Shown here in pieces: positions 2,634-19,973 of a stretch of DNA of 64,000 nucleotides. A model generated the notes under the pieces. That model made no database searches, was not told the origin of the DNA, and saw only the letters and a list, made by a program, of their open reading frames with translations. The position numbers and the translations under genes are program-made. The first letter of the stretch is position 1; the number at the start of each line of letters is the position of its first letter. The stretch lies in the sequence record NC_031245.1. One strand, given 5' to 3'.

Positions 2634-2999
2634 ATGTTAGAATTTTCAAGAAGCGAAAACTTAAATGAAAGTATTTCTTTAGGAGTAATTCGTAGGGACG
2701 ACGTAGCTCAAGTCCTTGTCCAAACACATATAGCTTACGAAGGTAAGAAAATTCCTAAAAAGGAACAAAAGGATGTAGCTTTCAGATTCTTAGCTCTAGC
2801 AGTAGTTAGTGGTGGAGCGAATCAGGCAGAGAAACTTATTGCTGATAGAATCCGTGCTCATGGAGAAAACTGGAGCAAGAAAGGTCTTCTTAGTAAGAAA
2901 TACAAAGGTAACATTGATCAATATGTAGAGAGTGCAATGGCTCAAATAAAAGAAGCTATTGAAGAAGGACTTAAGAAAACAGGCTACGATCAATTGTAA
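2634..2999 (+). CDS. Hypothetical protein
   Basis: 121-aa ORF with GAAGGA RBS, in operon context. Confidence 0.7.
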   Translation: MLEFSRSENLNESISLGVIRRDDVAQVLVQTHIAYEGKKIPKKEQKDVAFRFLALAVVSGGANQAEKLIADRIRAHGENWSKKGLLSKKYKGNIDQYVESAMAQIKEAIEEGLKKTGYDQL

Positions 3000-3025
3000 T
3001 TTCAAAAAGGCTAGTAAAGTTCTCC

Positions 3026-3056
3026 GCTTGATTGGACTTTGCTAGCCGTTTATAAT
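3026..3056 (+). promoter_or_regulatory. Phage promoter motif copy 2 (also sigmaA-like TTGATT-17-TATAAT)
   Basis: GCT at 3026, CGTTTATAAT at 3047-3056. Confidence 0.75.
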
Positions 3057-3112
3057 GGTGTAAGGTTCCTTGGAAATTCTAAGGAACCTATTTATATTTG
3101 AGGAGTGATTTT

Positions 3113-3589
3113 ATGTTCACTAAAGATACGTTAGAAGAGTTAAGAAATTTACCTAGACCTGAAAACTTTGGTAGTGACCCTAGACCACTATTTAAAGATG
3201 GAGTATTCAATCCTGATAACTGGAATGGTGGAGATGCTATTCCTCTAGAGAAATACGTTCACCATTTAGACGTTACTCCATTCCACAAATACCATCATCG
3301 AGTAATTCCTGATATATTTAATCCTGATGGTGATGGTGAATATTCTGTTGATTTAATGGAAAGTCTTTATCATTGCAATGACGTATGTTTCGTAACATTT
3401 CTTATGAAAGATACTGGTAGTGATGGAGGATTCTCTAATTACTTTCCTGAGAGTACTAATACCTTAGTTTATGAGAAGTATAAATCACGAGGTCACATCA
3501 GTAATTTATTATTCAATGGTAAACCAATTACTGAAGATGAATATCTTAAGTTCCTTAATTTATTATCAGAGAGTGGTTATAAATTCTGA
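3113..3589 (+). CDS. Hypothetical protein
   Basis: AGGAG at 3101-3105 before ATG 3113. Confidence 0.7.
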   Translation: MFTKDTLEELRNLPRPENFGSDPRPLFKDGVFNPDNWNGGDAIPLEKYVHHLDVTPFHKYHHRVIPDIFNPDGDGEYSVDLMESLYHCNDVCFVTFLMKDTGSDGGFSNYFPESTNTLVYEKYKSRGHISNLLFNGKPITEDEYLKFLNLLSESGYKF

Positions 3590-3777
3590 GTAGTAATTCA
3601 TAATACCATTTCAGAATAATTCTTTAGTAGCAATTATTTCTTACCAGATTATTTCTTAGAGAATTATTTCTTAGCAACATGATTAATTATAACCTACTAG
3701 TTTCTTATTAGCTAGTAGGTTATTAATTTATTATCAAAGTATCATTTCAGAAAGTTACGTATCGAAACATTATAATA

Positions 3778-3991
3778 ATAAGTACTTATAATAAGTACTT
3801 ATAAATAATAAGTACTTATAATAAGTACTTATAAATAATAAGTACTTATAATAAGTACTTATAAATAATAAGTACTTATAAATAATAAGTACTTATAATA
3901 AGTACTTATAAATAATAAGTACTTATAATAAGTACTTATAATAAGTACTTATAATAAGTACTTATAATAAGTACTTATAATAAGTACTTAT
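3778..3991. repeat. Tandem array of 15 copies of the 12-bp palindrome ATAAGTACTTAT; candidate replication origin
   Basis: Counted directly. Centre-to-centre spacings are 13,17,13,17,13,17,17,13,17,13,13,13,13,13. The array lies in a ~550-bp AT-rich non-coding gap. Confidence 0.95.
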
Positions 3992-4081
3992 TATAATGCC
4001 TCGCTAGCTAACTTATTTGATCCCCAGCGAACTAACTAATTAATGCTCAGGGAAGAAATTTAGAACTAATTTCGATCTGGT

Positions 4082-4112
4082 GCTGTCTAGAAGTCTGCTA
4101 AACGTTTATACT
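4082..4112 (+). promoter_or_regulatory. Phage promoter motif copy 3
   Basis: GCT at 4082, CGTTTATACT at 4103-4112, upstream of the RBS of ORF 4142. Confidence 0.7.
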
Positions 4113-4141
4113 TTTGAAGTTGGCTCAAGGAGGAGTACGTC

Positions 4142-4576
4142 ATGGAATCTCATTCAATTGTCACTTATCAATCGGATGATCTAAAAGAATTTAAATTAGT
4201 AGTACGTAGGTATGTATCCAAGGATAGGTATCTAGCTGATGTAATTGAATATCAAGGATTTTCAGTTATGAGGTATTTAGCTAGAGCAGTAGAAACTTGG
4301 GTTGCTACAGAAATACTTCAGAATTACGATAACGATTGTCTATCTAAAGGTATGGTATGCACTGATATGGCTATAGGTGCATCAGCAGATAGTCAAGCTA
4401 AATTGTACTCAAGATACTTTAGTAATTTAGAAAATAATCCTTCGTACTCCGAGTTACCTGATGCACGATGTGTTAGATGCGGACATAGCGATTGCATCCC
4501 TGGTATTAACAACTTTGCCATGAAAGAGTTCTACCTTTCATGGAGGTTTGAGGTTAGACAGTTAGGAGAGATTTGA
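4142..4576 (+). CDS. Hypothetical protein
   Basis: AAGGAGGAG RBS; 144 aa. Confidence 0.7.
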   Translation: MESHSIVTYQSDDLKEFKLVVRRYVSKDRYLADVIEYQGFSVMRYLARAVETWVATEILQNYDNDCLSKGMVCTDMAIGASADSQAKLYSRYFSNLENNPSYSELPDARCVRCGHSDCIPGINNFAMKEFYLSWRFEVRQLGEI

Positions 4577-4848
4577 TGTTCTCACTCAAGACATGGACTT
4601 ACATTGTAGTTGTATTACTTGCACTCGTTCCATGGAGTTTAATCCTCTCGATGCAGGGAGGATTTGACTTCAAACCTACCTATATTATAATGGCACTCCT
4701 CGGAGTTGCTATTGCATTATATTCGCTGAAACTTTTCATGATATACAGAGGTCAGGTAGGCAAGACATATTTCTTTATCATAATACTTTTAGCAATCATG
4801 CTCACAATTTCAGGGTCAATACACATCTTAGATTACTTACAACATTAG
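4576..4848 (+). CDS. Small membrane protein (about 3 hydrophobic segments)
   Basis: TGATG stop/start overlap, AGGAG RBS, hydrophobic stretches. Confidence 0.7.
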   Translation: MFSLKTWTYIVVVLLALVPWSLILSMQGGFDFKPTYIIMALLGVAIALYSLKLFMIYRGQVGKTYFFIIILLAIMLTISGSIHILDYLQH

Positions 4849-4858
4849 GAGGATTCTG

Positions 4859-5500
4859 ATGGACTTCAAAGACATCGAGAAACTACGCACCAAGTTTGCA
4901 GCAGATACTGCAGTGTATCTGTTTGAAGGAATCAATCAGGAAGTTAGTGCTGGAACAGAAGGTACTGTACTTCATCAGGAGCACGATGGAATTTATGTTT
5001 ATTTCAAGATTATTGGGAACACTAGTACCAAGTTCTTCAGATGGGAAGAATTAATGAAAGGTAAGCTGAGAACTAAAGAGGAGTGGAAAACTCTTACTAG
5101 ATCAGCTTGGCATGATAATCAATTTACTTCAGCAATCGTCCAGCTTACTAATATCAAAACTGGTAGTACTGCTGTAAGATATGTATATGGATTCAAAAAC
5201 CTCGAAATGATTGACGAATTCATAGCAATGATGAATCGTCGTCACTGGTTCGTTATTTGGGGAGGAACTCACGATCCAGGTTCAGTAGTAGCATTGGCTA
5301 AATTCAAGCCTACTACGGATGCTCAAATTACAGTACCTAACAGTCAAGATATTGAGGATGTCTTGAGTGGATTTAAACGAATAATAAAAGAGTTAGGTCA
5401 GTATCAAATTCAAGGACTCAGACCTGATATCGAGCAGACTGCACTAGCTAAGTGTAACAAGGAATTAGAAGATTATCTCAAAAGAAATAGAGAAGAGTAG
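4859..5500 (+). CDS. Hypothetical protein
   Basis: AGGAGG RBS; 213 aa. Confidence 0.75.
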   Translation: MDFKDIEKLRTKFAADTAVYLFEGINQEVSAGTEGTVLHQEHDGIYVYFKIIGNTSTKFFRWEELMKGKLRTKEEWKTLTRSAWHDNQFTSAIVQLTNIKTGSTAVRYVYGFKNLEMIDEFIAMMNRRHWFVIWGGTHDPGSVVALAKFKPTTDAQITVPNSQDIEDVLSGFKRIIKELGQYQIQGLRPDIEQTALAKCNKELEDYLKRNREE

Positions 5501-5511
5501 GGGATTATTAA

Positions 5512-6348
5512 ATGACCAAATTACCAGACAATGCAATACCAGTTCTAGATTTAGGCTACGTTAGACTTAAACCTGATGGTACGATGGGAAATGACCTTTC
5601 AGTAGTTAATGCTGCTAGAGCTAGTTATCTGAAGGAGTCAACAGTTCTGACAGAGGGAGATATCAGATTAATAAAGTTCCTATTGAAACATTCCCATACT
5701 TCTCCTTTCCGTCAAGCTACTGCTCAGCTCGAAATCAAGGCACCACTTATGGTAGCTCGTCAGTGGTTCAAATATCGAGTAGGTCACGATCATGGTCCAG
5801 ATACTGCTGAACTAGTTGGAGTATGTGTTCCTGAAGAGTTGCAAGATTACTTCTTCGACTTTGCTAGCAAAGTATTAGGATACGTACCTGCTGGTGATGA
5901 TAACGGATTCCAGGATTTAATGTATGCTAGAAACGAAGCTAGTCGTCGATACGTAACAATGGAGCCTGAATTCTACATTCCTCAATCAGATGAATGGAGA
6001 AGTGCTCCTGAAAATAGTAAACAAGGTAGCGGAGCTCCTATCGATTCAGAGATGGGTTCTCGATTAACTAGCCTACTTGAGTCAAACGTAGCTAGAGCTA
6101 TGCATGACTATCAGTGGGCACTCGATAAAGGAGTATGTGCTGAACAGGCAAGGTTATTTCTGCCAGCTTATTCGATGTACACAGTCTGGGTATGGACTTT
6201 CTCACTTCAAGGAGCAATCCATTTCTTAGCTCAGAGATTAGAGGATGATGCTCAGTACGAGATTCAGCTCTATGCTAAAGCAGTTCTCGAGCAGATCAAA
6301 CCTCTATTCCCAGTGAGCGTAGAGAAGTTCATGGAATTGAATAAGTAA
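5512..6348 (+). CDS. thyX: Flavin-dependent thymidylate synthase
   Basis: VVNAARASY, HTSPF, KAPLMVARQW, NEASRRY, AEQARLFLP, QRLEDDAQYEI. Confidence 0.93.
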   Translation: MTKLPDNAIPVLDLGYVRLKPDGTMGNDLSVVNAARASYLKESTVLTEGDIRLIKFLLKHSHTSPFRQATAQLEIKAPLMVARQWFKYRVGHDHGPDTAELVGVCVPEELQDYFFDFASKVLGYVPAGDDNGFQDLMYARNEASRRYVTMEPEFYIPQSDEWRSAPENSKQGSGAPIDSEMGSRLTSLLESNVARAMHDYQWALDKGVCAEQARLFLPAYSMYTVWVWTFSLQGAIHFLAQRLEDDAQYEIQLYAKAVLEQIKPLFPVSVEKFMELNK

Positions 6349-6360
6349 AGTTACAATTAA

Positions 6361-6400
6361 GGCTTACCCTCTGTCTGAGTAACTTATCAGAGGGTAAGTC
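6361..6400 (+). other. Intergenic hairpin (terminator or RNA processing site)
   Basis: GGCTTACCCTCTG / CAGAGGGTAAGTC inverted repeat, 13 bp with one G-U pair. Confidence 0.6.
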
Positions 6401-6426
6401 TCTGTTTGTGTATAGGGAGGGTCAAC

Positions 6427-7098
6427 ATGAAACTGGAATTAGATTCTGAGGGGACTAAAGTAAATATAGGAGTTGAAGGTACCGTAGGTGCTGGTAAATC
6501 AACTTTAACGAAAGCACTAGCGGAGAAGTTCGGATTCAATCTGGTCAGTGAACAATTTGAAAATCCTTACTTCGATTTATTCTATAGGGAACCTGAGAAG
6601 TATGCATTCTCAATGCATATCCAGATGTTCCGTCAGCACTTCAAAGAAGTCATGAAAGCTATGGAACTAGGAAATGTTATCATGGACAGAACAATGTTAG
6701 CTAGTTTAGTATTCATGAAAGTCCTTCACCAAGAAGGTACTGTTAATGAAGTCGATTACAAAAATTATGTGGATACGATTACGACATTTGCACCTCTAGT
6801 TAAGAGTCCTGATGTTATAATCTACTTGCAGGTTTCTAAAGAAACTAGTGTCCATAGAATTATGAATCGTGGTCGTTCTGCTGAACTTAATGCTAGCATT
6901 TCGTACTGGTACAGATTGCGTGATGAATACGAGAATTGGTATAAGAATTATACTCAATCACCAAAAATATTAGTGAATGTGGACGACCTCGACTTTGCTA
7001 ATAGACCTGAGGATCTTGACAGGACTATTGATCTTATTCGTAAAGAGCTACTAAAGATAAATTGCTCTAAAGTTGCTCAAGCATTTAGAGAAATTTAG
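6427..7098 (+). CDS. Deoxynucleoside kinase
   Basis: P-loop GVEGTVGAGKST, DRT motif, lid RIMNRGRSAE; GGAGG RBS before ATG 6427. Confidence 0.92.
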   Translation: MKLELDSEGTKVNIGVEGTVGAGKSTLTKALAEKFGFNLVSEQFENPYFDLFYREPEKYAFSMHIQMFRQHFKEVMKAMELGNVIMDRTMLASLVFMKVLHQEGTVNEVDYKNYVDTITTFAPLVKSPDVIIYLQVSKETSVHRIMNRGRSAELNASISYWYRLRDEYENWYKNYTQSPKILVNVDDLDFANRPEDLDRTIDLIRKELLKINCSKVAQAFREI

Positions 7099-11150: not shown

Positions 11151-11585
11151 ATGCAAAAGAACCCTAATGGTAGAGGAACTAGCGATCAAGATAAGGTTAA
11201 CCGTAATCTTAAGCAGTCCTCTAACAAAGATGTAGAATTCGGTACTGAAGGTGTAGTAGAAGCTACATCAGGAGATTCTGCTGGTCAGAATGAATCGTTT
11301 CGTGGGCGTACGATTAGGCAACTCAATCCAGTGAATGAATCCTCTCCAGAGTTTCATTCTAAACAGATTGTAGCTGTGCGTAGGAATGGAAGGAACATTT
11401 CAGCTGTTCAGTTCCAAGATGGATCTTCTGTAGATGTAGAAGAAGCTATTGCACTTGCAGAAGAAGGCTACATCGAAGGAGTTAACACTGGTACTACTCG
11501 TGGATCTGATGGTAAGCAGAAAACGTTACGTAGTTACCCTGATGGGGATGCAAGTAACAATCTGGATAACTTACCTTCATTCTAA
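11151..11585 (+). CDS. DUF3892-domain protein with low-complexity N-terminus
   Basis: IVAVRRN...DG...EEAIALAEEG.IEGVN...LRSYPDG...NNLDNLPSF. Confidence 0.8.
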   Translation: MQKNPNGRGTSDQDKVNRNLKQSSNKDVEFGTEGVVEATSGDSAGQNESFRGRTIRQLNPVNESSPEFHSKQIVAVRRNGRNISAVQFQDGSSVDVEEAIALAEEGYIEGVNTGTTRGSDGKQKTLRSYPDGDASNNLDNLPSF

Positions 11586-11614
11586 TCGAATTTAGATTAC
11601 CTCCGTTTGTACTC

Positions 11615-11645
11615 AGGGAGTAGGATTTCCTACTCCCTATTTATA
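11615..11645 (+). terminator. Probable intrinsic terminator
   Basis: AGGGAGTAGG-ATTT-CCTACTCCCT followed by an AT-rich tail. Confidence 0.55.
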
Positions 11646-11649
11646 TAAT

Positions 11650-11946
11650 ATGAAAGTAGGTAACCTTATGGTAGATAACTTAGATGAAGCTAAAAGAAGA
11701 AAGTCTCATAAAGAACCTCAACTTAAAGCTGACCTTGAAGAAGTACTTAAGAAGTTAGCTGCAGGAGAGTTCCCTAAGTACAATCGTACTGAAACTCTAA
11801 GAGATTTTGGTAAAGCTAAATCATTCTCAGATGGAGTAAGAGCAGTCGTGAAAACAATGATCAGACTGTCAGGTGCTTCACCTAACAATGACCAATTACT
11901 TCAGCATTATGAGTTAGCAATTATCCAACATATTCTGAAAGGTTAA
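11650..11946 (+). CDS. Hypothetical protein
   Basis: 98-aa ORF; start could be 11650 or 11668. Confidence 0.6.
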   Translation: MKVGNLMVDNLDEAKRRKSHKEPQLKADLEEVLKKLAAGEFPKYNRTETLRDFGKAKSFSDGVRAVVKTMIRLSGASPNNDQLLQHYELAIIQHILKG

Positions 11947-12015
11947 TCCTCAACTAATACACCTAGGTAGGCTTGAGTCCTCTGATAACACCTCATTTTA
12001 TGGAGGTGACCTCTA

Positions 12016-12303
12016 TTGAAACCTATAGATCCAGAAATTATGAAATCATTCTCCGAATTTAAGGCACTCCAAATATCTTCCGAATTAGGGGATATATTGG
12101 TTTTGAGAGATGACGATCCGTCGATTACATTAGAATTCCGTCATAAATTAGCTCAAACTTTAGGTAATAGGTTAGGTGTCCCTATAATATTTATAAAGGA
12201 TACTATGGAAGTTGAGCTTAGCACGATCGATAACGTTAGAAAGTTACTGGATAAGATGGAGTCTAAGATAAAAGAACTAAGACCGTCCTCAGAATTGCAT
12301 TAG
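12016..12303 (+). CDS. Hypothetical protein upstream of terminase
   Basis: GGAGGTG RBS, TTG start. Confidence 0.65.
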   Translation: MKPIDPEIMKSFSEFKALQISSELGDILVLRDDDPSITLEFRHKLAQTLGNRLGVPIIFIKDTMEVELSTIDNVRKLLDKMESKIKELRPSSELH

Positions 12304-12314
12304 GAGGTAAGTAT

Positions 12315-13931
12315 ATGGAAGACTTGATACAAATTCTCCAGTCAGAGGATTCTCAGTTAGCTAAACTGGCTGCTGATATGGGTATTGACCCTAAAAGTAT
12401 GACTGAAGAGGAACGAAGAGTACTAATTCAAATTCTCCAGGAGATGGCTACCGATGGTGATTCTGAGACGCTAAATAGCTTATTCTATGCTGACTATGAC
12501 GAAGTCCCAGTCGACATAGATACATTTATAGAAGATCCAGAATACTTCGGTAATGGTACTGATCAAGGTAAACTTATCTATCCTTTCTGGAGAAAGGAAC
12601 TAAGAAAGATATTTGCTCCAGGTAATAAATATTTCGAGGTTTGTCTATCAGGAGATACGGAGGTCAAACTACTTGACGGACGTACTCTTACTATGGAACA
12701 GATGCTTCTTGAGCAGATTAGTGGTACCGATAAGTTCTATGTTTATTCTTATGATATGAGACTAAATAAAGTTACAGTCGGAACTGCTCACTCAATCATG
12801 CCTACGGGTATTAAACCAGTATATCGGATTACATTAGATAACGGAGAGTCATTCAAGGCTACGGATAACCATAAAATCCTTATGCGGGATAAGTCCTGGA
12901 AGACTGTAGGTCAATTGTCAGAAGGAGATAGCTTAATGCCATTCAACTGGACTTATGATGGCAAAGGGTACGAGCAAATTAGTCATCCTAAAAAGGATGG
13001 ATCCTCAAGGACTGAACCTACTCACGTCATGGTTAAGAAGTGGAAGTACGGAGGGTTCGCCTACAATCGCAAGAAGAAACGTACGATGCATCATCGTGAC
13101 TTTAATAAGAGGAACAATGATCCTCGTAATTTGGTAGCTACTGAGCATCAAGCTCATATCGAGTACCACTCTAAAGTGATCAGCCAGAGACTGAGAGATC
13201 CAGAATTCCAAGCTAAAATGACTGAGGGTAAGAGACGTAAGTTCAAAGATCCTAAACATCGAGAAAGATTAAGACGTACTATTAGTGAGGACTGGAAGAA
13301 CAATTATGAAAGAAGAGTAGCTGCTGTATCCGGTAATAATCAGGAGTTTATGAATTCCGAGGAAGGCAAGAACTTAGCTAAGTCTAATCTTAAGATATTC
13401 CAGGATGCCCTCAAGAACGGGGAAGACTGGGCAGTCGAGAAGCATCGTAAGAAATCTCAAGAAGCATCACGTAAGAGGTGGTCCAAGGATGGAGTCCGAT
13501 CAGCCGTAATACGGATATGTCGTAAGCTATATGATGAAGACACTGAGATTAGTGAAAGCACGTACAATTCAGCTAAACCTCACAACATGAAGAATTGGAA
13601 GAAGTTATTTAGTGAGGGATTCTTTGAATCTGAAAGTGAGCTAATAACTCAAGTCGAAAATTACAACCACAGGGTTGTATCCATCGAATATGTTGGAGAA
13701 GAGGTAGTCTATGATATGCAAGTTGACTCCGAGCACAACTTCGGATTGCAGTGCGGAGCATTCGTACACAATTGTGTCACTGGAGGTATCGGACTAGGTA
13801 AGTCAACAATTGCAGTTATCGGATTAGGGTATTCTTTACATAAGTTGTTATGCCTAAAGAATCCCCAAGAGTACTACGGACTGACTAAGTCATCAATAAT
13901 AGGCATTGCTTTCTTTAATATAACACTGGAT
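12315..13931 (+). CDS. terL: Terminase large subunit, exon 1 of the N-terminal precursor (contains intein 1 and Walker A)
   Basis: After intein removal it reads YFEV|CVTGGIGLGKST (Walker A). The exon ends at ...NITLD, U13931. Confidence 0.9.
12642..13772 (+). mobile_element. Cis-intein (377 aa) with an HNH endonuclease domain
   Basis: CLSGDTEV block A, ATDNHKIL block B, HHRDFNKRNNDPRNL HNH motif, VYDMQV..EHNF...FVHN/C C-terminus. Confidence 0.93.
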
Positions 13932-15127
13932 TAACCGACTGACTGGTCCAGTATAAACCTCGAGAATTGCTGGGACGCTCGCTAATGTTAAGGTACTCGC
14001 TAATGCAGTAATAATCCTTAAGATTGAGTAATCAGCAGCCGAGCCTACTAAGTTTCATACAGTTGGACTAAAGTGATGTTGAAGGCTTCTACTTCAAGGA
14101 GGTCGTCGAATGTTACAGTGTCCAATATGTGATAAAGAAGTGAAGATGTTGAGACGACATCTTATGATAACTCACAAACTAACTAAGAAAGAAATAAGTG
14201 AACGTTATGGTCATTTGAAAATGATAACTGATGACGTTAGAAAGTCTAGAACTGAAGGTGCTAAGAGAGGATGGAAGAATTCTGACAAACTTCCTGAGTC
14301 ACGTAAGCACATGTGGAAAGATCCTAAAAATAAAGAAAACCATCTCAAGTCTATGTCAAGTAAGGAAGTCCGAGGTAAAATATCTCAAGCTATGAAAGAG
14401 GCATGGCAAGATGAGGACAAGAGAGCTAATCTACTTCAGGCTACTAGAGAGTCCCACAATACTCCTGAATATCTTGAGAAAGTTAGTAATATCAAAAAGG
14501 AGCAGTGGAGTGATGCTGAGTGGCGAGCAATGATGGAGGAAAAGTTCGCTAGTGAGGAGTACCGTCAGCGAGTATCTGAAGGTCAGAAGAAGAGCTACGA
14601 ACGTAATCCTGAACGTAGAGAGCTCGTAAGTCAGAATAACTTAAGAAGATGGAGAAATAGAGACAGTACTCCTGACGACGGATTTGTCAATCCGAATATG
14701 AACCATGGTCAATTTCCTTACAAGGATATGTTCATGAGAAGTAGTTGGGAGGTCAAGGTCGCTAAAGTTCTAGATGAATTAGGGATAGTTTATCAATACG
14801 AAACTGTATCTATTCCTTACGAGGGTCACACATATGTTACAGACTTCTACCTACCAGAGTTCAATACAGTTCTTGAGGTCAAGCCTAATCGATTTACAAA
14901 TGATCCTATAGTTCAAAAGAAGAAGTTAGCTTGTGAGAAATTATACGAGTTCCACTTTATTACAGAAGATGATATGAAAGACTTAGTAGGAAGGTTCAGA
15001 GACTATCGAAAGGGTAAGCTCACTAATGCGTGAGTGTAGAACCGAGTAGAGTACTGCGTATATAATACGTGGGAAGCACGAGGCATCCTGCTAGCTATAG
15101 CAGGTAATGATATAGTCCAACTAATTG
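13932..15127 (+). mobile_element. Group I intron 1 (in terL), 1,196 nt
   Basis: P1 CTGGAT/GTCCAG with U13931-G13946 wobble; core AAACCTCGAGAATTGCTGGGA and AATCAGCAGCC; P7 GACTATC/GATATAGTC; P8 CCTGCTA/TAGCAGG; P10 GACTG/CAGTC; terminal G15127. Splicing restores NITLD-QSYGVAY. Confidence 0.88.
14110..15033 (+). CDS. Intron-encoded homing endonuclease (N-terminal Zn finger, helical repeats, C-terminal PD-(D/E)XK / T7 endonuclease I-like domain)
   Basis: CPIC...H...H; MRSSWEVKVAKVLDELGIVYQYE...TDFYLPE...LEVKP; AAGGAGGT RBS; located in the P6 loop. Confidence 0.8.
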   Translation: MLQCPICDKEVKMLRRHLMITHKLTKKEISERYGHLKMITDDVRKSRTEGAKRGWKNSDKLPESRKHMWKDPKNKENHLKSMSSKEVRGKISQAMKEAWQDEDKRANLLQATRESHNTPEYLEKVSNIKKEQWSDAEWRAMMEEKFASEEYRQRVSEGQKKSYERNPERRELVSQNNLRRWRNRDSTPDDGFVNPNMNHGQFPYKDMFMRSSWEVKVAKVLDELGIVYQYETVSIPYEGHTYVTDFYLPEFNTVLEVKPNRFTNDPIVQKKKLACEKLYEFHFITEDDMKDLVGRFRDYRKGKLTNA

Positions 15128-15601
15128 CAGTCATATGGTGTTGCCTATCGTAAGCTCCAAGGATTTCTAAAGGATTCTCCTTGGTTCTTACGTAACGGTA
15201 CAGTTCGTGGACTAAAGAACAAAGTCTATAAACCCAATAAGGGTATTGAATTCGTAGTAGGTTCAAGTCCTTCTCACGGTTTAGGACGTGATATCTTCTG
15301 TTTGACTGGTGAAAGTAAAATATATACTCCTGAAGGAGTGAAAACTCTAAGTCAAGTAGAGGGTCAGGAAGTCTGCGTACTTTCATTCAATCCTGCGACT
15401 GAGAAGTTTGAGTGGAGTGATCCTGCTCTAGTAGCTGCTACGGGAGTTCGTAATGATGTATACGAAATAGGATTCGAGGATGAGTCCTTTATGCGTTGTA
15501 CAGGCGATCATAAAGTTATGGTACGAGTTAGTTCAGGTACTACAGAATACAAAGAAGCTAAATCACTAATCCCAGGTGATGATGTTATATCACTCAACTG
15601 A
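15128..15601 (+). CDS. terL: Terminase exon 2: 57 aa of extein plus the N-half of a split intein
   Basis: QSYGVAYRKLQ...GLGRDIF|CLTGESKI...CTGDHKV...SLN stop. Confidence 0.88.
   Translation, partial: QSYGVAYRKLQGFLKDSPWFLRNGTVRGLKNKVYKPNKGIEFVVGSSPSHGLGRDIFCLTGESKIYTPEGVKTLSQVEGQEVCVLSFNPATEKFEWSDPALVAATGVRNDVYEIGFEDESFMRCTGDHKVMVRVSSGTTEYKEAKSLIPGDDVISLN
15299..15598 (+). mobile_element. Split intein N-fragment (IntN, 100 aa)
   Basis: Cys1 with block A (CLTGESKIYT) and block B (CTGDHKV), ending at a stop codon with no block F or G. Confidence 0.9.
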
Positions 15602-15672
15602 AATGCCAATAATAGGCTTATACTTTGGTTACTCTGAGGAGTTCCTATCAAACATTTTGGAGGTAGAGTATA

Positions 15673-16365
15673 GTGCCTATTACGTTTTTACGTGAGAATG
15701 AAGAAGTTATTATGCAAGAAGATAAATGGGTTACAGTAACAAAAGGGAGTAGCCCATTGAAAGGTCGTCACTTGTTATTGGATGATAAGGGTAATATCAA
15801 AGGTGGTAATGTCCCTAAACATGTCCAAGATAAGATGAAAGGTGGTAAAGTTAGTAAAGGTGGTTCTTCTAAGAAGGATTACAAGGATATGAGTGATGAC
15901 GAGAAGAAATCCATGGGTGATAGTCGTCGTAAACACTTCAGAGATGGTATTGATAAAGAAGCTAAGAAAGCGTTATCAACTCCAGCTACTGATGATAAAG
16001 TTTATAGTGGTAAAAAGACTATTAAACGTTACACTGTCCCTGAGGAGAATTTTGGATTGGGTCATTCAGGCTTAGGTTCTGAGAGATACGCTAAAGCTAT
16101 AGCTGATGTTAAAATGGCAGCTAAAGACCTGACTACTAAGATGCAGAAGAAATACCCTGGAGCTAAAGTTGAGTTCGAAGCAAATGCTAGGTCTACTGGT
16201 ATCGGTGCTGGTGGGGTTATGTATAAAAACCCTACTTTTAAAGTTAAAGGGGTACCTCACGAAGATCCACTTCATAATAATGCCCTTAAGATTCTAGCTG
16301 CTCATTTGAGTAAAGCAGACAATAACAGTAACGCTATTGGTAAGTCTTTAGGAGTTCACTGGTAA
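15673..16365 (+). CDS. Lys-rich hypothetical protein inserted between the split-intein halves
   Basis: GGAGGT RBS, GTG start, 230 aa, no recognisable nuclease motif. Confidence 0.8.
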   Translation: MPITFLRENEEVIMQEDKWVTVTKGSSPLKGRHLLLDDKGNIKGGNVPKHVQDKMKGGKVSKGGSSKKDYKDMSDDEKKSMGDSRRKHFRDGIDKEAKKALSTPATDDKVYSGKKTIKRYTVPEENFGLGHSGLGSERYAKAIADVKMAAKDLTTKMQKKYPGAKVEFEANARSTGIGAGGVMYKNPTFKVKGVPHEDPLHNNALKILAAHLSKADNNSNAIGKSLGVHW

Positions 16366-16402
16366 TAGACTCTCATCAAAATCTTGAAGGATAGGTGATA
16401 TT

Positions 16403-16534
16403 ATGAAAGTCACTTACGTCAAGAAGCTTGATGGGGAACATAAAGTATATGATGTAGTTAATGCTGGACCTTATAACAACTTTGTCATACAACCCAATGG
16501 AACGACTACTTCTAACGGAGTAGTCGTTCACAAT
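16403..16534 (+). mobile_element. Split intein C-fragment (IntC, 44 aa)
   Basis: Blocks F and G ending in His-Asn, followed by Cys+1 at 16535. Confidence 0.9.
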
Positions 16535-17869
16535 TGTGGTCTACTGGACGAGGTTGAGTTCGTAGCTGGCGGTAACGCTAAGATGGAACAGTCTAAGATC
16601 ATGCAACTTTATCGTACTATCAAGCGACGTATGGAATCCCGATACATGAAAATGGGTGAGTTGCCTGGTATCCTATTTCTTGTATCATCAAAGAAGTCAG
16701 ACCATGACTTCTTAGAACAATATATACAGCAAGTTCGGACTAATCCTAACGTTCACGTAGTGGATCAACCTTTATGGAAAGTTAAACCTAAAAGTAACTA
16801 TTCAGGTAACTTCTTCCTACTGGCAGTAGGTAATAAAGTGTTGCCTTCTAAGATCATAGCCGAACATGAAAACAAAGATGACTACATTGAACAAGGATAT
16901 CGAGTAATCGAAGTTCCAGTTGAGCATAAACAAGCATTCGAATTAGATATTAGTGCTGCTCTCATGGATATTGCAGGTATAGCGATGGCTAGTACCTCTA
17001 AATATATCCACTATGATAAGTTGATGAAGGTAATATCTAAACATCGTGAGAATCCGTTTCGTATGGATCAGATTGTCCTAGAATTCAATGGACCTGAAGA
17101 AATTGCTGACTACATGGATTTATCTAAGATCCATGAAGAGGATTTAAGTAGTCCTTGCTTTATCCATATAGACCCATCCTTATCAGGAGACTCCACAGGT
17201 ATTGCAATGACAACTATCAAAGGAGCAGGATCAGTTGAACGATTAGTTCGAGGAGAAATTCAGAGAGTTAATGATTTGGTGTATAAAATGGTCTTTGGAG
17301 TTGCTATTAAAGCAGTTGCAGGTAGCCAGATTCCATTCCATAAGATACGTCAATTCATATATTGGCTAAGAGATACACTAGGAGCCAATGTTCAAATGGT
17401 TACTGCCGACTCCTTCCAATCAGCGGATATGTTACAACAATTGAAGTTGAATGGATTTGAGACTAAAGTTATTTCAGTTGACCGTAAACGTGAGCCATAC
17501 GATATGCTACGAAATTCGATCAACGAGGAACGTATAGATATTTTACCTCAATCAATACTTGAGGACGAACTAGTTAACTTAGAAGAAGATAAAATCAAGG
17601 GTAAAATCGACCACCCTATTAACGGTAGTAAGGATATTGCCGATGCTTTAGCAGGGTCAGTTGCTGCAGCAGCTCATCACCCAATTGCCGTTCATATGAT
17701 GAACTCTGGTGAAGATGCTATGTTAATCGGTAGTGGTTCTACTGAGTTCGAACAATTGGGTAACGATTCTTGGGTCATCGAAGATGATGATATCGTAGAT
17801 GTTTATGACGATGATGCTCTAAGTAAGATGAGCAGTCATGGATCCAATGGTCGAGTACTTGACTGGTAA
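16403..17869 (+). CDS. terL: Terminase C-terminal precursor: IntC plus Walker B and nuclease domain
   Basis: Own AGGTG RBS. MKVTYVKK...VYDV...NNF...VVHN|CGLLDEVEF; nuclease motifs HIDPSLSGDSTG, DSFQS, KIDHP..GSKDIADA. Confidence 0.92.
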   Translation: MKVTYVKKLDGEHKVYDVVNAGPYNNFVIQPNGTTTSNGVVVHNCGLLDEVEFVAGGNAKMEQSKIMQLYRTIKRRMESRYMKMGELPGILFLVSSKKSDHDFLEQYIQQVRTNPNVHVVDQPLWKVKPKSNYSGNFFLLAVGNKVLPSKIIAEHENKDDYIEQGYRVIEVPVEHKQAFELDISAALMDIAGIAMASTSKYIHYDKLMKVISKHRENPFRMDQIVLEFNGPEEIADYMDLSKIHEEDLSSPCFIHIDPSLSGDSTGIAMTTIKGAGSVERLVRGEIQRVNDLVYKMVFGVAIKAVAGSQIPFHKIRQFIYWLRDTLGANVQMVTADSFQSADMLQQLKLNGFETKVISVDRKREPYDMLRNSINEERIDILPQSILEDELVNLEEDKIKGKIDHPINGSKDIADALAGSVAAAAHHPIAVHMMNSGEDAMLIGSGSTEFEQLGNDSWVIEDDDIVDVYDDDALSKMSSHGSNGRVLDW

Positions 17870-17893
17870 GACATCCAAGGAGGTTATACATCT

Positions 17894-19408
17894 ATGTGGT
17901 TATTTGAAAAACTAGGGATGAGGAAAGTCGAGGATATCTCGAATAGTCGTAATGATTATACTAGCATGGAAGACTTGCTACAGAAAGCTGACGTGAACAC
18001 TTGGGATACAGTCCAAAAACTTAGAGATGTCTCGAGTACTAAGTCAGCTGTATTCAAAGAATATGAGAATATGGCTAACGATGTATTCATCGCTTCAGCC
18101 TTAGAATTATATGCAGATGATGCTGTTCAGTCCGAAATACGTACTGGCAGATTGGTATGGATAACAGCTAAAGACAAAGACCTTCAGTCCGATTTAGATG
18201 TGTTAATGGACGAGTTAGAGATAGAGTCACGTGTTTGGGACTGGGCACATAATGTAGCTCATTATGGGGAACTATTCCTTAAATTATTTTTCGATGAACA
18301 AGGTAGACTTCTAAAATACGTAGAAGAAGTCTCAGATCCAGGTAATTTGCTAGATTTACAATATATGGGTAAAACCGAATACTTCGCTACAGTTCAAAAT
18401 GAGGTAGATGGTGCCAAGAAAGTACAGAAATTAACATTACAAGATCCTGACTCCTACGTACACTTCATGATTCGTAAAGCTAATAGGTTTGACGAGATTG
18501 ATGTGAAGATACCTAAAGTCGAAGAAGATGGAACAACTACCACTGAAGTTCAACAAAAATACAAAGTTGCTCGTGGAGTTTCCATTCTAGAACCGCTACG
18601 ATCAAGCTACCGTATTTTAAGGCTATTAGAAGACTCACTAATAGTAGCACGACTAAGTCGTTCAGCAATGATTCGTATGTTCTCAGTTGAGGTAGGTACT
18701 GCACCTCCTAAGAAAGCTAGAGAAATGGTTAATAAACTCAAGAAACTATTGGACTCTCAAGAACAAGTAGATGTTCAAAGTGGTGAGTTTGCTAGTAAGA
18801 AATCACCTGGACCTATTGATGATCCTTTGATCATACCGACTCGTAATGGTAAAGGTTCAGTCAGCTATCAAAACATCGGAGGAGATGTTGATGTTAGAAG
18901 TATAACTGATATCGATTACTTCCGTAACAAGATGTTCGCTGGATTGAAAGTACCTAAAGCTTTCTTGGGATTCGAAGAATTCCTACCAGGAGGAATGGGT
19001 CAGTCGCCTCTAACTAAGTTGGATGTGAGGTACGCTAGAACAGTTAAACGTGTTCAGAATGCTGTAAGGGATGGTATCAAGAAGTTATTGAACTTGTACC
19101 TTATTGATCAGGGTCGTGATGGTCAGGTTAATCAGTTCGAAGTTCATATGACTGAGCCTTCATCCTCTGAAGAAGCTGACCGTATGGTGGATATGAGCAA
19201 CCGAATTGCATTGGCTGACTCTATGATGAGATTGCTTGACACTGAGACTACTAAAGGAATGTTCGACAACTATAAATTGGTATCCACAATCCTCAAAGAA
19301 GTACTTAAGTACGAGGAATTACAAGATACACTTCTTCCTCATGATAAATATAAAGAATTTGTGAAGCAACAAGAAGAGCAAATGGCTAGTGGAGAAGGAG
19401 AGTATTAA
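17894..19408 (+). CDS. Portal protein (T4 gp20-like)
   Basis: LLEDSLIVARLSR, DIDYFRNKMFAGLKVPK; follows the terminase. Confidence 0.9.
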   Translation: MWLFEKLGMRKVEDISNSRNDYTSMEDLLQKADVNTWDTVQKLRDVSSTKSAVFKEYENMANDVFIASALELYADDAVQSEIRTGRLVWITAKDKDLQSDLDVLMDELEIESRVWDWAHNVAHYGELFLKLFFDEQGRLLKYVEEVSDPGNLLDLQYMGKTEYFATVQNEVDGAKKVQKLTLQDPDSYVHFMIRKANRFDEIDVKIPKVEEDGTTTTEVQQKYKVARGVSILEPLRSSYRILRLLEDSLIVARLSRSAMIRMFSVEVGTAPPKKAREMVNKLKKLLDSQEQVDVQSGEFASKKSPGPIDDPLIIPTRNGKGSVSYQNIGGDVDVRSITDIDYFRNKMFAGLKVPKAFLGFEEFLPGGMGQSPLTKLDVRYARTVKRVQNAVRDGIKKLLNLYLIDQGRDGQVNQFEVHMTEPSSSEEADRMVDMSNRIALADSMMRLLDTETTKGMFDNYKLVSTILKEVLKYEELQDTLLPHDKYKEFVKQQEEQMASGEGEY

Positions 19409-19416
19409 TCGAGTAG

Positions 19417-19447
19417 GCTGTATCCACCTTTCCTAAACGTCTATACT
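19417..19447 (+). promoter_or_regulatory. Phage promoter motif copy 6, upstream of the RNR cassette
   Basis: GCT at 19417, CGTCTATACT at 19438-19447. Confidence 0.7.
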
Positions 19448-19514
19448 TGTGAAGTCGTTCTTGAGGAAAGGTGGGAATATAGTAATGCTATGGTAACGCT
19501 AAAGGAGGTACTTT

Positions 19515-19973
19515 ATGAGTAGCACTTACACTCGTCAAGAAGCACTGGAGTCTTTATACCGTATAACTTTTGCAGAAGCTCCAGAAACTCCGAGGTACAC
19601 TAAAGCCAAGGAGTACATTAAATCTACTTTATCTAGTAAAGGGGTACCTGAAGAAGTCATCAAATTTCTAGATGAAGAGACTTCATCTGGATTTTCTCAA
19701 TGTTTCTTGTCACGTTTAAAGGATAAGAAATTTATGAGGACTTTAAGGTCACTCGAGAGTGGGACTAAATTACCTAATGAAGTTGTTGTAAAAGCAGTCA
19801 ATTCCTTGATCACTCATGCTATAATAGATATTGAGTTAGGTAACACTTCACGTCAAGTCGTAGTGAATAACCTTCAGATCGATAAATTGATGAACATCGT
19901 ACAATACTACTTTAATACAGGTAGTTTACCTGATTCTACATATGAGACAATTAGGAATTTACTGGACAGCTAG
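19515..19973 (+). CDS. Hypothetical protein
   Basis: AAAGGAGGT RBS; 152 aa. Confidence 0.75.
   Translation: MSSTYTRQEALESLYRITFAEAPETPRYTKAKEYIKSTLSSKGVPEEVIKFLDEETSSGFSQCFLSRLKDKKFMRTLRSLESGTKLPNEVVVKAVNSLITHAIIDIELGNTSRQVVVNNLQIDKLMNIVQYYFNTGSLPDSTYETIRNLLDS

Follow-up and report, generated by a model that had tools for sequence, protein, structure and literature searches.

The large terminase subunit (TerL) of Bacillus phage SP-15 is very probably made from two separately translated precursors that are joined by protein trans-splicing. The DNA analysed here, hereafter the window, is a 64,000-nucleotide stretch of record NC_031245.1, and its TerL locus is that of phage SP-15 (KT624200.1, Thornevirus; 100% identity, window coordinates being equal to record coordinates). 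Five consecutive plus-strand genes of the GenBank record, SP15_022 to SP15_026, make up this locus. Inside it the TerL gene is broken at a split intein, whose N-terminal half (IntN, 100 residues) closes SP15_024 and whose C-terminal half (IntC, 44 residues) opens SP15_026. Further upstream the same gene is interrupted by a contiguous intein that bears an HNH endonuclease domain and by a probable group I intron. SP-15 TerL is thus a compact example of three kinds of self-splicing element in one gene, and the mature protein would need three splicing events, one of RNA, one of protein in cis and one of protein in trans.

The anatomy of the split intein can be read directly. The open reading frame (ORF) at 15125-15601 reads ...GLGRDIF, CLTGESKIYTPEG...FMRCTGDHKVMV...PGDDVISLN and then TGA. 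The Cys1 codon (TGT, 15299-15301) directly follows the N-extein, and IntN (CLTGESK...DDVISLN) runs for 100 codons to 15598 before it meets the stop at 15599-15601; its block A is CLTGESK and its block B is CTGDH (T68, H71). A stretch of 801 nt (15602-16402) separates it from ATG 16403, which is preceded by AAGGA (16387-16391) and AGGTGA (16393-16398). From this ATG the 44 codons of IntC, ending at 16534, read MKVTYVKKLDGEHKVYDVVNAGPYNNFVIQPNGTTTSNGVVVHN; they open with MKVTYVKKLD, contain block F (KVYDVV..NNF) and block G (GVVVHN), and are followed by Cys+1 at 16535 and then by GLLDEVEF. The sequence therefore holds what defines a class 1 intein (Cys1, the Thr-x-x-His of block B, blocks F and G, His-Asn and a Cys at +1) and what defines a canonical split (separate ORFs, a break between blocks B/N4 and F, independent translation signals). 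Both gene parts lie in one locus in matching orientation and order, as in a 'fractured gene'. The break falls in the loop where inteins usually carry their endonuclease. All this agrees with the original prediction for this region, which had been made from the letters alone. Its coordinates for IntN (15299-15598), the gap and IntC (16403-16534) proved exact when the sequence was read again, and so did its account of an IntN that has Cys1 and blocks A and B and then stops, of an IntC that begins a new gene 801 nt on with its own ribosome-binding site, and of an IF/CG junction (GRDIF / CGLLDEVEF). Its central claim, a natural canonically split intein in a phage TerL, is backed by the tiling of the exteins, the Walker B site, the invariant catalytic residues, the conserved split and the purifying selection described below.

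Where in TerL does the intein sit? A 142-kb viral contig (L005) encodes an uninterrupted TerL of 630 aa, on which the four extein pieces of SP-15 tile at residues 1-98, 100-151, 152-208 and 209-604, with no gap or overlap at the junctions in the alignment; those on either side of the split intein abut at residues 208 and 209. The split intein consequently lies between ...GRDIF and (A/C)G(F/L)LDE(M/V)EF, a point that this alignment places within Walker B of the packaging ATPase (GRDIF / CGLLDEVEF). Empty alleles (L005, L004, L067-L078) read ...GRDIF / AGFLDE... or ...GQQIY / CAFMDE... at this point without any insert, and the junction consensus in at least seven diverged pairs is (D/E)(I/V)F / C(G/A)(L/M/I)(L/M)DE. 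In four metagenome contigs with a split-intein TerL (L060, L061, L063 and L054) the frame breaks or stops right after HNCG(I/M)LDE(V/I), which points to another hotspot of insertion, one to two codons beyond Walker B.

Both halves were compared with known inteins. Searched on its own, IntN hits Spl DnaX, a mini-intein of the PDB (E 2e-4), and, weakly and below the cut-off, Pfam Intein_splicing (E 0.0035). A profile of seven orthologous IntN sequences retrieved 26 PDB matches, all of them inteins or bacterial intein-like (BIL) domains, with Spl DnaX as the best (3.3e-9), NrdJ-1 in second place (1e-8) and the Npu DnaE N-fragment also among them (3e-5); the last two are natural split inteins. The IntC profile retrieved only two, with E about 0.8, and both were Npu DnaE IntC chains. 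Within the window the IntC profile matches only the IntC ORF, and the IntN profile only the IntN ORF and the first TerL intein (the latter with E 6e-13). Judged by these scores, the similarity of the split halves to inteins is more than chance.

Searches with TerL and with the intein pieces located a matching split at the matching TerL site in at least six lineages besides SP-15; the metagenome search that the original prediction had proposed did yield further split-intein loci, and cultured phages have them too. The carriers are three Logan assemblies of a close SP-15 relative (L006-L008), the cultured Listeria phage LIS04 (L010) and Bacillus phage vB_BceM-HSE3 (L011), Logan and IMG/VR contigs (L009/L015), the group L003/L052/L053, and the cultured Streptococcus phage vB_SagM-GXN1 with the related L055/L056. 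Several more metagenome contigs carry a split TerL intein. Across seven lineages C1, L2, G4, T68 and H71 of IntN are invariant, as are Y16, D17, N26, F27, H43 and N44 of IntC and C45 (that is, Cys+1). The IntN stop occupies one alignment position in all seven, the split point being constant among lineages with 45-91% extein identity, and a Shine-Dalgarno (SD)-like site and a start codon (ATG, TTG or GTG) precede IntC in 7/7. The distance between the halves is, on the other hand, variable. It is 30 nt in L003 and 93 nt in LIS04, where the spacer consists of stop, SD and start; L006 and SP-15 have one ORF of 195-230 aa in the gap, HSE3 and L009 a basic ORF of 90-99 aa (46% identical mutually, unrelated to SP15_025), and L055 five ORFs over 2.7 kb. 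In the one, unverified assembly of GXN1 the halves are about 60 kb apart (N part at 61.2-62.1 kb, C part at 122.6 kb). Nor is the relative frame of the halves constant, since it is equal in SP-15 and differs in L003, L006, HSE3 and L009. With spacing and frame both variable, a cis mechanism at the level of the RNA or the ribosome does not fit. The widely separated halves of L055 and GXN1 are the strongest indirect support for joining in trans. The interval would tolerate insertions because each half is translated on its own.

Selection has acted on both halves. Between SP-15 and L006, where synonymous sites are saturated (proportion of synonymous differences, pS, 0.6-0.8), the ratio of non-synonymous to synonymous divergence (dN/dS) comes to 0.09 in IntN and 0.066 in the C-extein; for IntC the proportion of non-synonymous differences (pN) is 0.11, with pS saturated at 0.80. 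Because non-synonymous divergence is low in both, the halves have been maintained as coding sequence, and by these estimates purifying selection on them is comparable to that on the exteins. This makes RNA splicing, ribosomal bypass and a pseudogene all unlikely. As far as such comparisons tell, the split state is kept by selection and is not a recent lesion. In addition, the SP-15 record holds only one TerL C-terminal match, and as SP-15 is a propagated phage the split gene must work.

A model of how SP-15 TerL might be assembled can be put together from these elements. Removal of the group I intron (13932-15127) from the mRNA would allow precursor N (696 aa) to be read from 12315; it would comprise the N-terminal 219 residues of TerL together with the HNH intein, and would end in IntN. 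The HNH intein would then excise itself in cis. Precursor C (488 aa), translated from its own SD and ATG 16403, would consist of IntC and the 444-aa C-extein. The net charge of IntN is -8 in SP-15 and from -6 to -18 across lineages, that of IntC mostly neutral to +3, and the acidic IntN may associate with the slightly basic IntC to form the HINT fold. Class 1 chemistry would be expected to follow: an N-S acyl shift at Cys1, trans-thioesterification to Cys+1, cyclisation of Asn44 aided by His43, and finally an S-N shift. Phe-1 would in this way be joined to Cys+1 (...GRDIF + CGLLDEVEF...), giving the junction peptide DIFCGLLDEVEFVAGGNAK and restoring Walker B in a TerL of ~663 aa (~75 kDa).

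Several points weigh against this model. That members of this intein family splice in trans is something we infer from their sequence. The SP-15 IntC has a charge of only +1 and the L003 IntC is acidic, so charge complementarity is not universal. The similarity of IntC to known inteins is, taken alone, not statistically significant, its profile being too short. Rfam does not recognise the intron on whose removal precursor N depends. Finally, the 60-kb separation in GXN1 comes from a sparsely annotated assembly with only 40 features.

Could the gap itself be spliced out? An ORF-bearing group I or group II intron at 15602-16402, removed from the RNA to restore a contiguous, cis-splicing mini-intein, would be in keeping with the probable group I intron 1.5 kb upstream in TerL, with the reading frame that IntN and IntC share in SP-15, and with the contiguous mini-intein alleles that occur at this site. 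The gap, however, has no Rfam match even at E up to 1, its non-coding flanks measure only 71 and 37 nt, and IntC comes with an SD and an ATG of its own. The relatives reinforce this: spacers of 30 and 93 nt made up of stop, SD and start, halves that differ in frame in four of them, and halves that are 2.7 kb and five genes (L055) or about 60 kb (GXN1) apart. Such an intron is highly improbable. Ribosomal bypass or readthrough was likewise rejected, given ~17 stops in the IntN frame across the gap and a spacer whose length and frame are not conserved.

Two further explanations accept the break in the protein, or take it for damage. The TerL fragments might be held together non-covalently by the intein halves, or act as separate subunits, with no peptide bond formed between them; the halves of split inteins are known to bind tightly, and splicing in this family is deduced from residues and not from products. 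Dimerisation alone, though, needs none of C1, T..H, H-N and C+1, and these are invariant despite exteins that are only about 45-55% identical; moreover, an unspliced HINT domain of 144 residues would sit in the Walker B strand (DIF / CGLLDE). We regard this alternative as very unlikely. The other explanation is decay of TerL into a pseudogene, or an error of assembly or sequencing that puts a spurious stop into a contiguous intein whose endonuclease is degraded. In its favour, stops in the endonuclease region are a route by which inteins do decay, according to a model cited in a preprint (bioRxiv 10.1101/2025.01.02.630785), and SP15_022 to SP15_025 are annotated as just hypothetical or resolvase. 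Against this stand the single TerL C-terminal match in the record of a viable phage, a stop whose position recurs in independent isolates and metagenomes, purifying selection on both halves, and a middle ORF that is intact, conserved in L006-L008 and unrelated to endonuclease remnants. Decay or artefact is thus barely credible, and trans-splicing of two precursors is the reading that we retain.

The gene between the halves, SP15_025 (15673-16365), almost fills the 801-nt gap and has a good SD (GGAGG) 9 nt before its GTG at 15673. Its product consists of an N-terminal module of ~40 aa, a Lys-rich linker and a small alpha/beta C-terminal domain. It has no match in Pfam, PHROG or NCBIfam, hence no nuclease family or motif was detected there, and a word-indexed search returned only the protein itself. 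An exhaustive search found a single full-length homologue, P0002, which is 47-50% identical and lies at the equivalent place in L006-L008; dN/dS between the two is 0.40, while the flanks are 81-98% identical. The N-terminal module (15673-15840; residues 14-55 of SP15_025; KWVTVxK...GRxLLLDDxGNIxGG), with conserved W19, T21, G31, R32, G40, G45, P48 and K54, recurs at the start of or inside larger proteins. Metagenome proteins that bear it range from 56 to about 1700 aa, some having weak ADP-ribosyltransferase-type Pfam matches; the module itself matches no Pfam family, and the genomic contexts of the carriers P0008 and P0011 were uninformative. An AlphaFold2 (AF2) model, built on a 6-sequence alignment, was poor (predicted local distance difference test score, pLDDT, 51). 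Judged from these comparisons, SP15_025 is a real, conserved gene and nothing marks it as a nuclease. The original prediction had stated that the intein has no endonuclease; this holds for the halves, and leaves aside that the free-standing SP15_025 sits where 'fractured genes' carry a homing endonuclease. In the same way its picture of the locus was right about the split and silent on SP15_025 in the gap, on the HNH intein at Walker A and on the probable group I intron.

Might SP15_025 nevertheless be a new kind of free-standing homing endonuclease that mobilises the split intein, which would make the locus a fully typical 'fractured gene'? Its position is that of the GIY-YIG or Vsr-like genes in the loci of Dassa et al. 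(PMC2677866), IntN of L016/L019 runs at the equivalent point into a fused GIY-YIG nuclease, and SP15_025 has evolved much faster than its flanks (47% vs 81-98% identity), as is common for selfish genes. But neither Pfam nor PHROGs nor NCBIfam detects a nuclease, the N-terminal module is one common to large multi-domain proteins and not to nucleases, the gap in other lineages holds an unrelated basic 90-99-aa ORF or nothing, and the structure model is too poor to judge by. We consider a nuclease role unlikely. What the locus does have, by comparison with the Dassa loci, is the intervening gene, with a nuclease domain undetected in it, and it is a 'fractured gene' without a proven homing endonuclease. 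A more speculative idea, to which we attach only a slim chance, is that the interval between the halves is a protected landing site for non-nuclease cargo, of which SP15_025 would be one case and the ORFs of HSE3/L009 a second. If it held, these would represent a new class of intein-associated genes, either with a new homing-nuclease fold or acting as terminase maturation or packaging factors, and the three splicing events (RNA, cis-protein and trans-protein) could amount to a timing or redox checkpoint on DNA packaging.

Upstream of the split, TerL is interrupted twice more (Table 1). The first intein, residues 110-486 of SP15_022 (CLSGDTEV...VHN), lies between ...YFEV and the Walker A sequence CVTGGIGLGKS; it matches Pfam Intein_splicing (E 9.5e-17) and a PHROG of HNH endonucleases (E 5.5e-8), and L006, LIS04 and L003 lack it, having EV / CVTGGIGLGKS or its equivalent at this point. 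SP15_022 then comes to its stop directly behind ...FFNITLD, and TerL continues 1196 nt on, without an SD, with the QSYGVAY of SP15_024. Relatives that lack the intron read FFNITLDQSYGVAY across the junction; FFNITLD / QSYGVAY is unbroken in L006 and LIS04 and has counterparts in L003, L005, HSE3 and L009. The interruption has an internal guide, UGACUG / GUCCAGU, at 13940-13952. Its second part pairs with the last seven bases of the 5' exon (ACUGGAU) as P1, with U.G at the splice site, and its first part with the first six bases of the 3' exon (CAGUCA) as P10; a terminal G stands at 15127. No such guide arose in 20000 shuffles (0/20000). By eye, we take the sequences at 13965, 14030, 14062 and 15109 to be P/Q/R/S-like core elements, and a minimum free energy (MFE) fold of the ORF-less intron sequence pairs P with Q and R with S. 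Rfam returned no intron or other RNA family in 11500-18500, in the 5' part of the intron alone or in the 3' part of an insertion in LIS04; the 924-nt ORF that interrupts the intron core may explain the miss. As Rfam has no match, the group I call draws on the exon junction, the terminal G and the P1 and P10 pairings, and on these grounds we think it very likely that 13932-15127 is a group I intron, with splicing predicted. When its 5' part was compared with the phage collection by blastn, only SP-15 itself was found.

The gene within the intron, SP15_023, encodes a protein of 307 aa with a zinc-finger N-terminus and a PD-(D/E)XK / endonuclease I-like C-terminus. It matches phrog_22215 (E 2.7e-155) as well as resolvase and endonuclease PHROGs, and weakly Pfam Phage_endo_I, and is a probable homing endonuclease. 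In LIS04 (L010, 3330-4500) a phrog_22215 nuclease gene lies between ...SHGLG and RDIF, four codons before the split-intein site; this insertion, negative in Rfam, is probably another intron at a different TerL position.

Table 1. Genes and sequence elements of the SP-15 TerL locus, in window coordinates.
Feature	Coordinates	Strand	Record annotation or basis
SP15_022	12315-13934	+	Annotated hypothetical
SP15_023	14110-15033	+	Annotated 'holliday junction resolvase'
SP15_024	15125-15601	+	Annotated hypothetical
SP15_025	15673-16365	+	Annotated hypothetical
SP15_026	16403-17869	+	Annotated 'putative terminase large subunit'
TerL extein piece 1, 109 aa, N-terminal region	12315..12641	+	Aligns with L005 TerL residues 1-98; within SP15_022
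First intein, contiguous, 377 aa, HNH endonuclease domain	12642..13772	+	Pfam Intein_splicing and PHROG HNH matches
TerL extein piece 2, 53 aa, Walker A ... FFNITLD	13773..13931	+	Aligns with L005 TerL residues 100-151
Probable group I intron, 1196 nt	13932..15127	+	P1, P10, terminal G, exon junction
Intron-borne nuclease gene SP15_023, 307 aa	14110..15033	+	phrog_22215; probable homing endonuclease
TerL extein piece 3, 57 aa, QSYGVAY...GLGRDIF (immediate N-extein)	15128..15298	+	Aligns with L005 residues 152-208
IntN, 100 aa and TGA stop	15299..15601	+	Blocks A/B, profile matches, invariant residues
Spacer with SD GGAGG (15659-15663) for SP15_025	15602..15672	+	Read from sequence
SP15_025, 230 aa, between the intein halves	15673..16365	+	Full-length homologue P0002 at equivalent place in L006-L008
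Spacer with SD-like AAGGA and AGGTGA (16387-16398) for the IntC gene	16366..16402	+	Read from sequence
IntC, 44 aa	16403..16534	+	Blocks F/G, invariant residues
TerL C-extein, 444 aa and stop, from Cys+1 (CGLLDEVEF); rest of ATPase and nuclease domain	16535..17869	+	Aligns with L005 residues 209-604

A scan of 11900-19600 for promoters and terminators gave counts not above those in shuffled sequence. The SP-15 genome paper (PMC5977210) does not mention inteins, introns or terminase, and in the GenBank records of HSE3 and LIS04 the pieces are labelled 'intein splicing region protein' or 'Hint domain protein' with no further comment. HSE3 has one more intein close by: gp053 (L011, 3019-3537), annotated dCTP deaminase and located just upstream of TerL, contains a mini-intein (CLEANTEIY...IYAHN / C).

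The Walker B site is occupied in different ways in different TerL genes. Contiguous mini-intein alleles occur in metagenomes (L057, L064, L079 and L022, the last in a more distant TerL) and bridge the split point with a short loop (5-15 residues in L057 and L022). In L016/L019 the end of IntN continues in frame into a GIY-YIG nuclease, while a small ORF of its own encodes IntC. In a tree of C-exteins the split, contiguous and empty alleles are interleaved, the clade of SP-15, L006, LIS04, HSE3 and L009 being uniformly split. L064 (contiguous) and L065 (split) have nearly identical TerL C-exteins and clearly different intein sequences, a contrast that indicates, at the level of these alignments, intein exchange independent of the host gene. 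Such an allele pattern is that expected from a homing cycle combined with the gene-breaking model of Dassa et al. (PMC2677866), in which the endonuclease loop is invaded, the invader is lost or replaced, and the halves then drift apart.

Other TerL genes are interrupted elsewhere too. In L016 (IMG/VR 3300045988_162567; 2889-6886) IntC and 15 extein residues form a 61-aa ORF, and its TerL is interrupted again, by ~340 nt behind ...FFDEID and by a contiguous mini-intein at DHPDHG / C...VHN / SKD. In GXN1 (L013, 2462-5423; L012, 3521-4477; assembly unverified) TerL is apparently in three pieces, the nuclease motif of its C part (DHPPNS / C ... HN / SKD) being the site of a second split intein, in which a Vsr-like nuclease is fused to IntN and IntC is in an overlapping ORF.

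How does this locus compare with known systems? A literature search found no paper on a canonically split TerL intein or on the SP-15 locus; the SP-15 split intein is thus unreported, and the kind of element is already known: in 2009 Dassa et al. (PMC2677866) described naturally split inteins of phage-type genes whose halves have a gene between them. In the fractured genes of gp41-1, gp41-8, NrdJ-1 and IMPDH-1 reported there, as in SP-15, an intein breaks a phage-type gene of DNA metabolism, the lengths of IntN (about 88-105 aa) and of IntC (about 33-54 aa) are in keeping with the 100 and 44 aa of SP-15, both halves share locus and orientation, a free-standing gene separates them, and IntC is independently translated. 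They differ in their site, which in SP-15 is TerL Walker B, in the GIY-YIG or Vsr-like nuclease that they carry in the gap, where SP-15 has a gene without a recognisable nuclease domain, and in their source: they come only from ocean metagenomes, whereas the SP-15 type of split TerL intein occurs in cultured Bacillus, Listeria and Streptococcus phages. Split inteins in phage large terminase genes are themselves known from GOS-TerL, whose locus is one of Dassa's fractured genes (PMC2677866), from AceL-TerL and from the engineered Cat-TerL. These are atypically split after block A, with an IntN of 25-37 aa and an IntC of 104-115 aa in place of 100 and 44 (PMC11766414), so the contrast that the original prediction drew with AceL and Cat is correct; GOS-TerL also uses Ser1, whereas the SP-15 intein has Cys1 and Cys+1.

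For the two upstream elements there are precedents as well. The contiguous TerL inteins of actinobacteriophages (Kelley et al. 2016; bioRxiv 10.1101/2025.01.02.630785) are placed in conserved ATPase motifs like the SP-15 inteins, splice in cis and mostly carry LAGLIDADG endonucleases; the HNH intein at SP-15 Walker A is of this contiguous kind, and the Walker B intein is split. The interruption at 13932-15127 resembles the TerL group I introns with Vsr-like or HNH nuclease genes of the Bastillevirinae (PMC11878797), those with Vsr-like nuclease genes having been shown to splice in the TerL of other Bacillus phages. It shares with them a Bacillus phage TerL host, P1, P10, the terminal G and a PD-(D/E)XK-type nuclease gene, and differs in its phage lineage (Thornevirus), in escaping Rfam detection and in that its splicing is predicted.

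The DnaE inteins of Npu and Ssp share with SP-15 the canonical split, a long acidic IntN, a short IntC, and Cys1 and Cys+1. Their halves (dnaE-n/dnaE-c) are unlinked, as in GXN1, and lie hundreds of kb apart compared with 801 nt in SP-15; host gene and lineage also differ, and similarity is low (E about 3e-5 at profile level). Phage split inteins such as gp41-1 and NrdJ-1 are among the fastest tools for protein ligation. The SP-15 split intein could serve for the same purpose, and the canonically split TerL family offers at least seven diverged IntN/IntC pairs as candidates for screening of speed and orthogonality. With cultured carriers, one of them a phage of Bacillus subtilis, what trans-splicing does in an essential gene becomes open to genetics and is no longer confined to metagenomic reconstruction. 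The contiguous, split-adjacent, split-with-cargo and unlinked alleles found at one TerL site correspond to the pathway from mini-intein to unlinked halves that was proposed in 2009.

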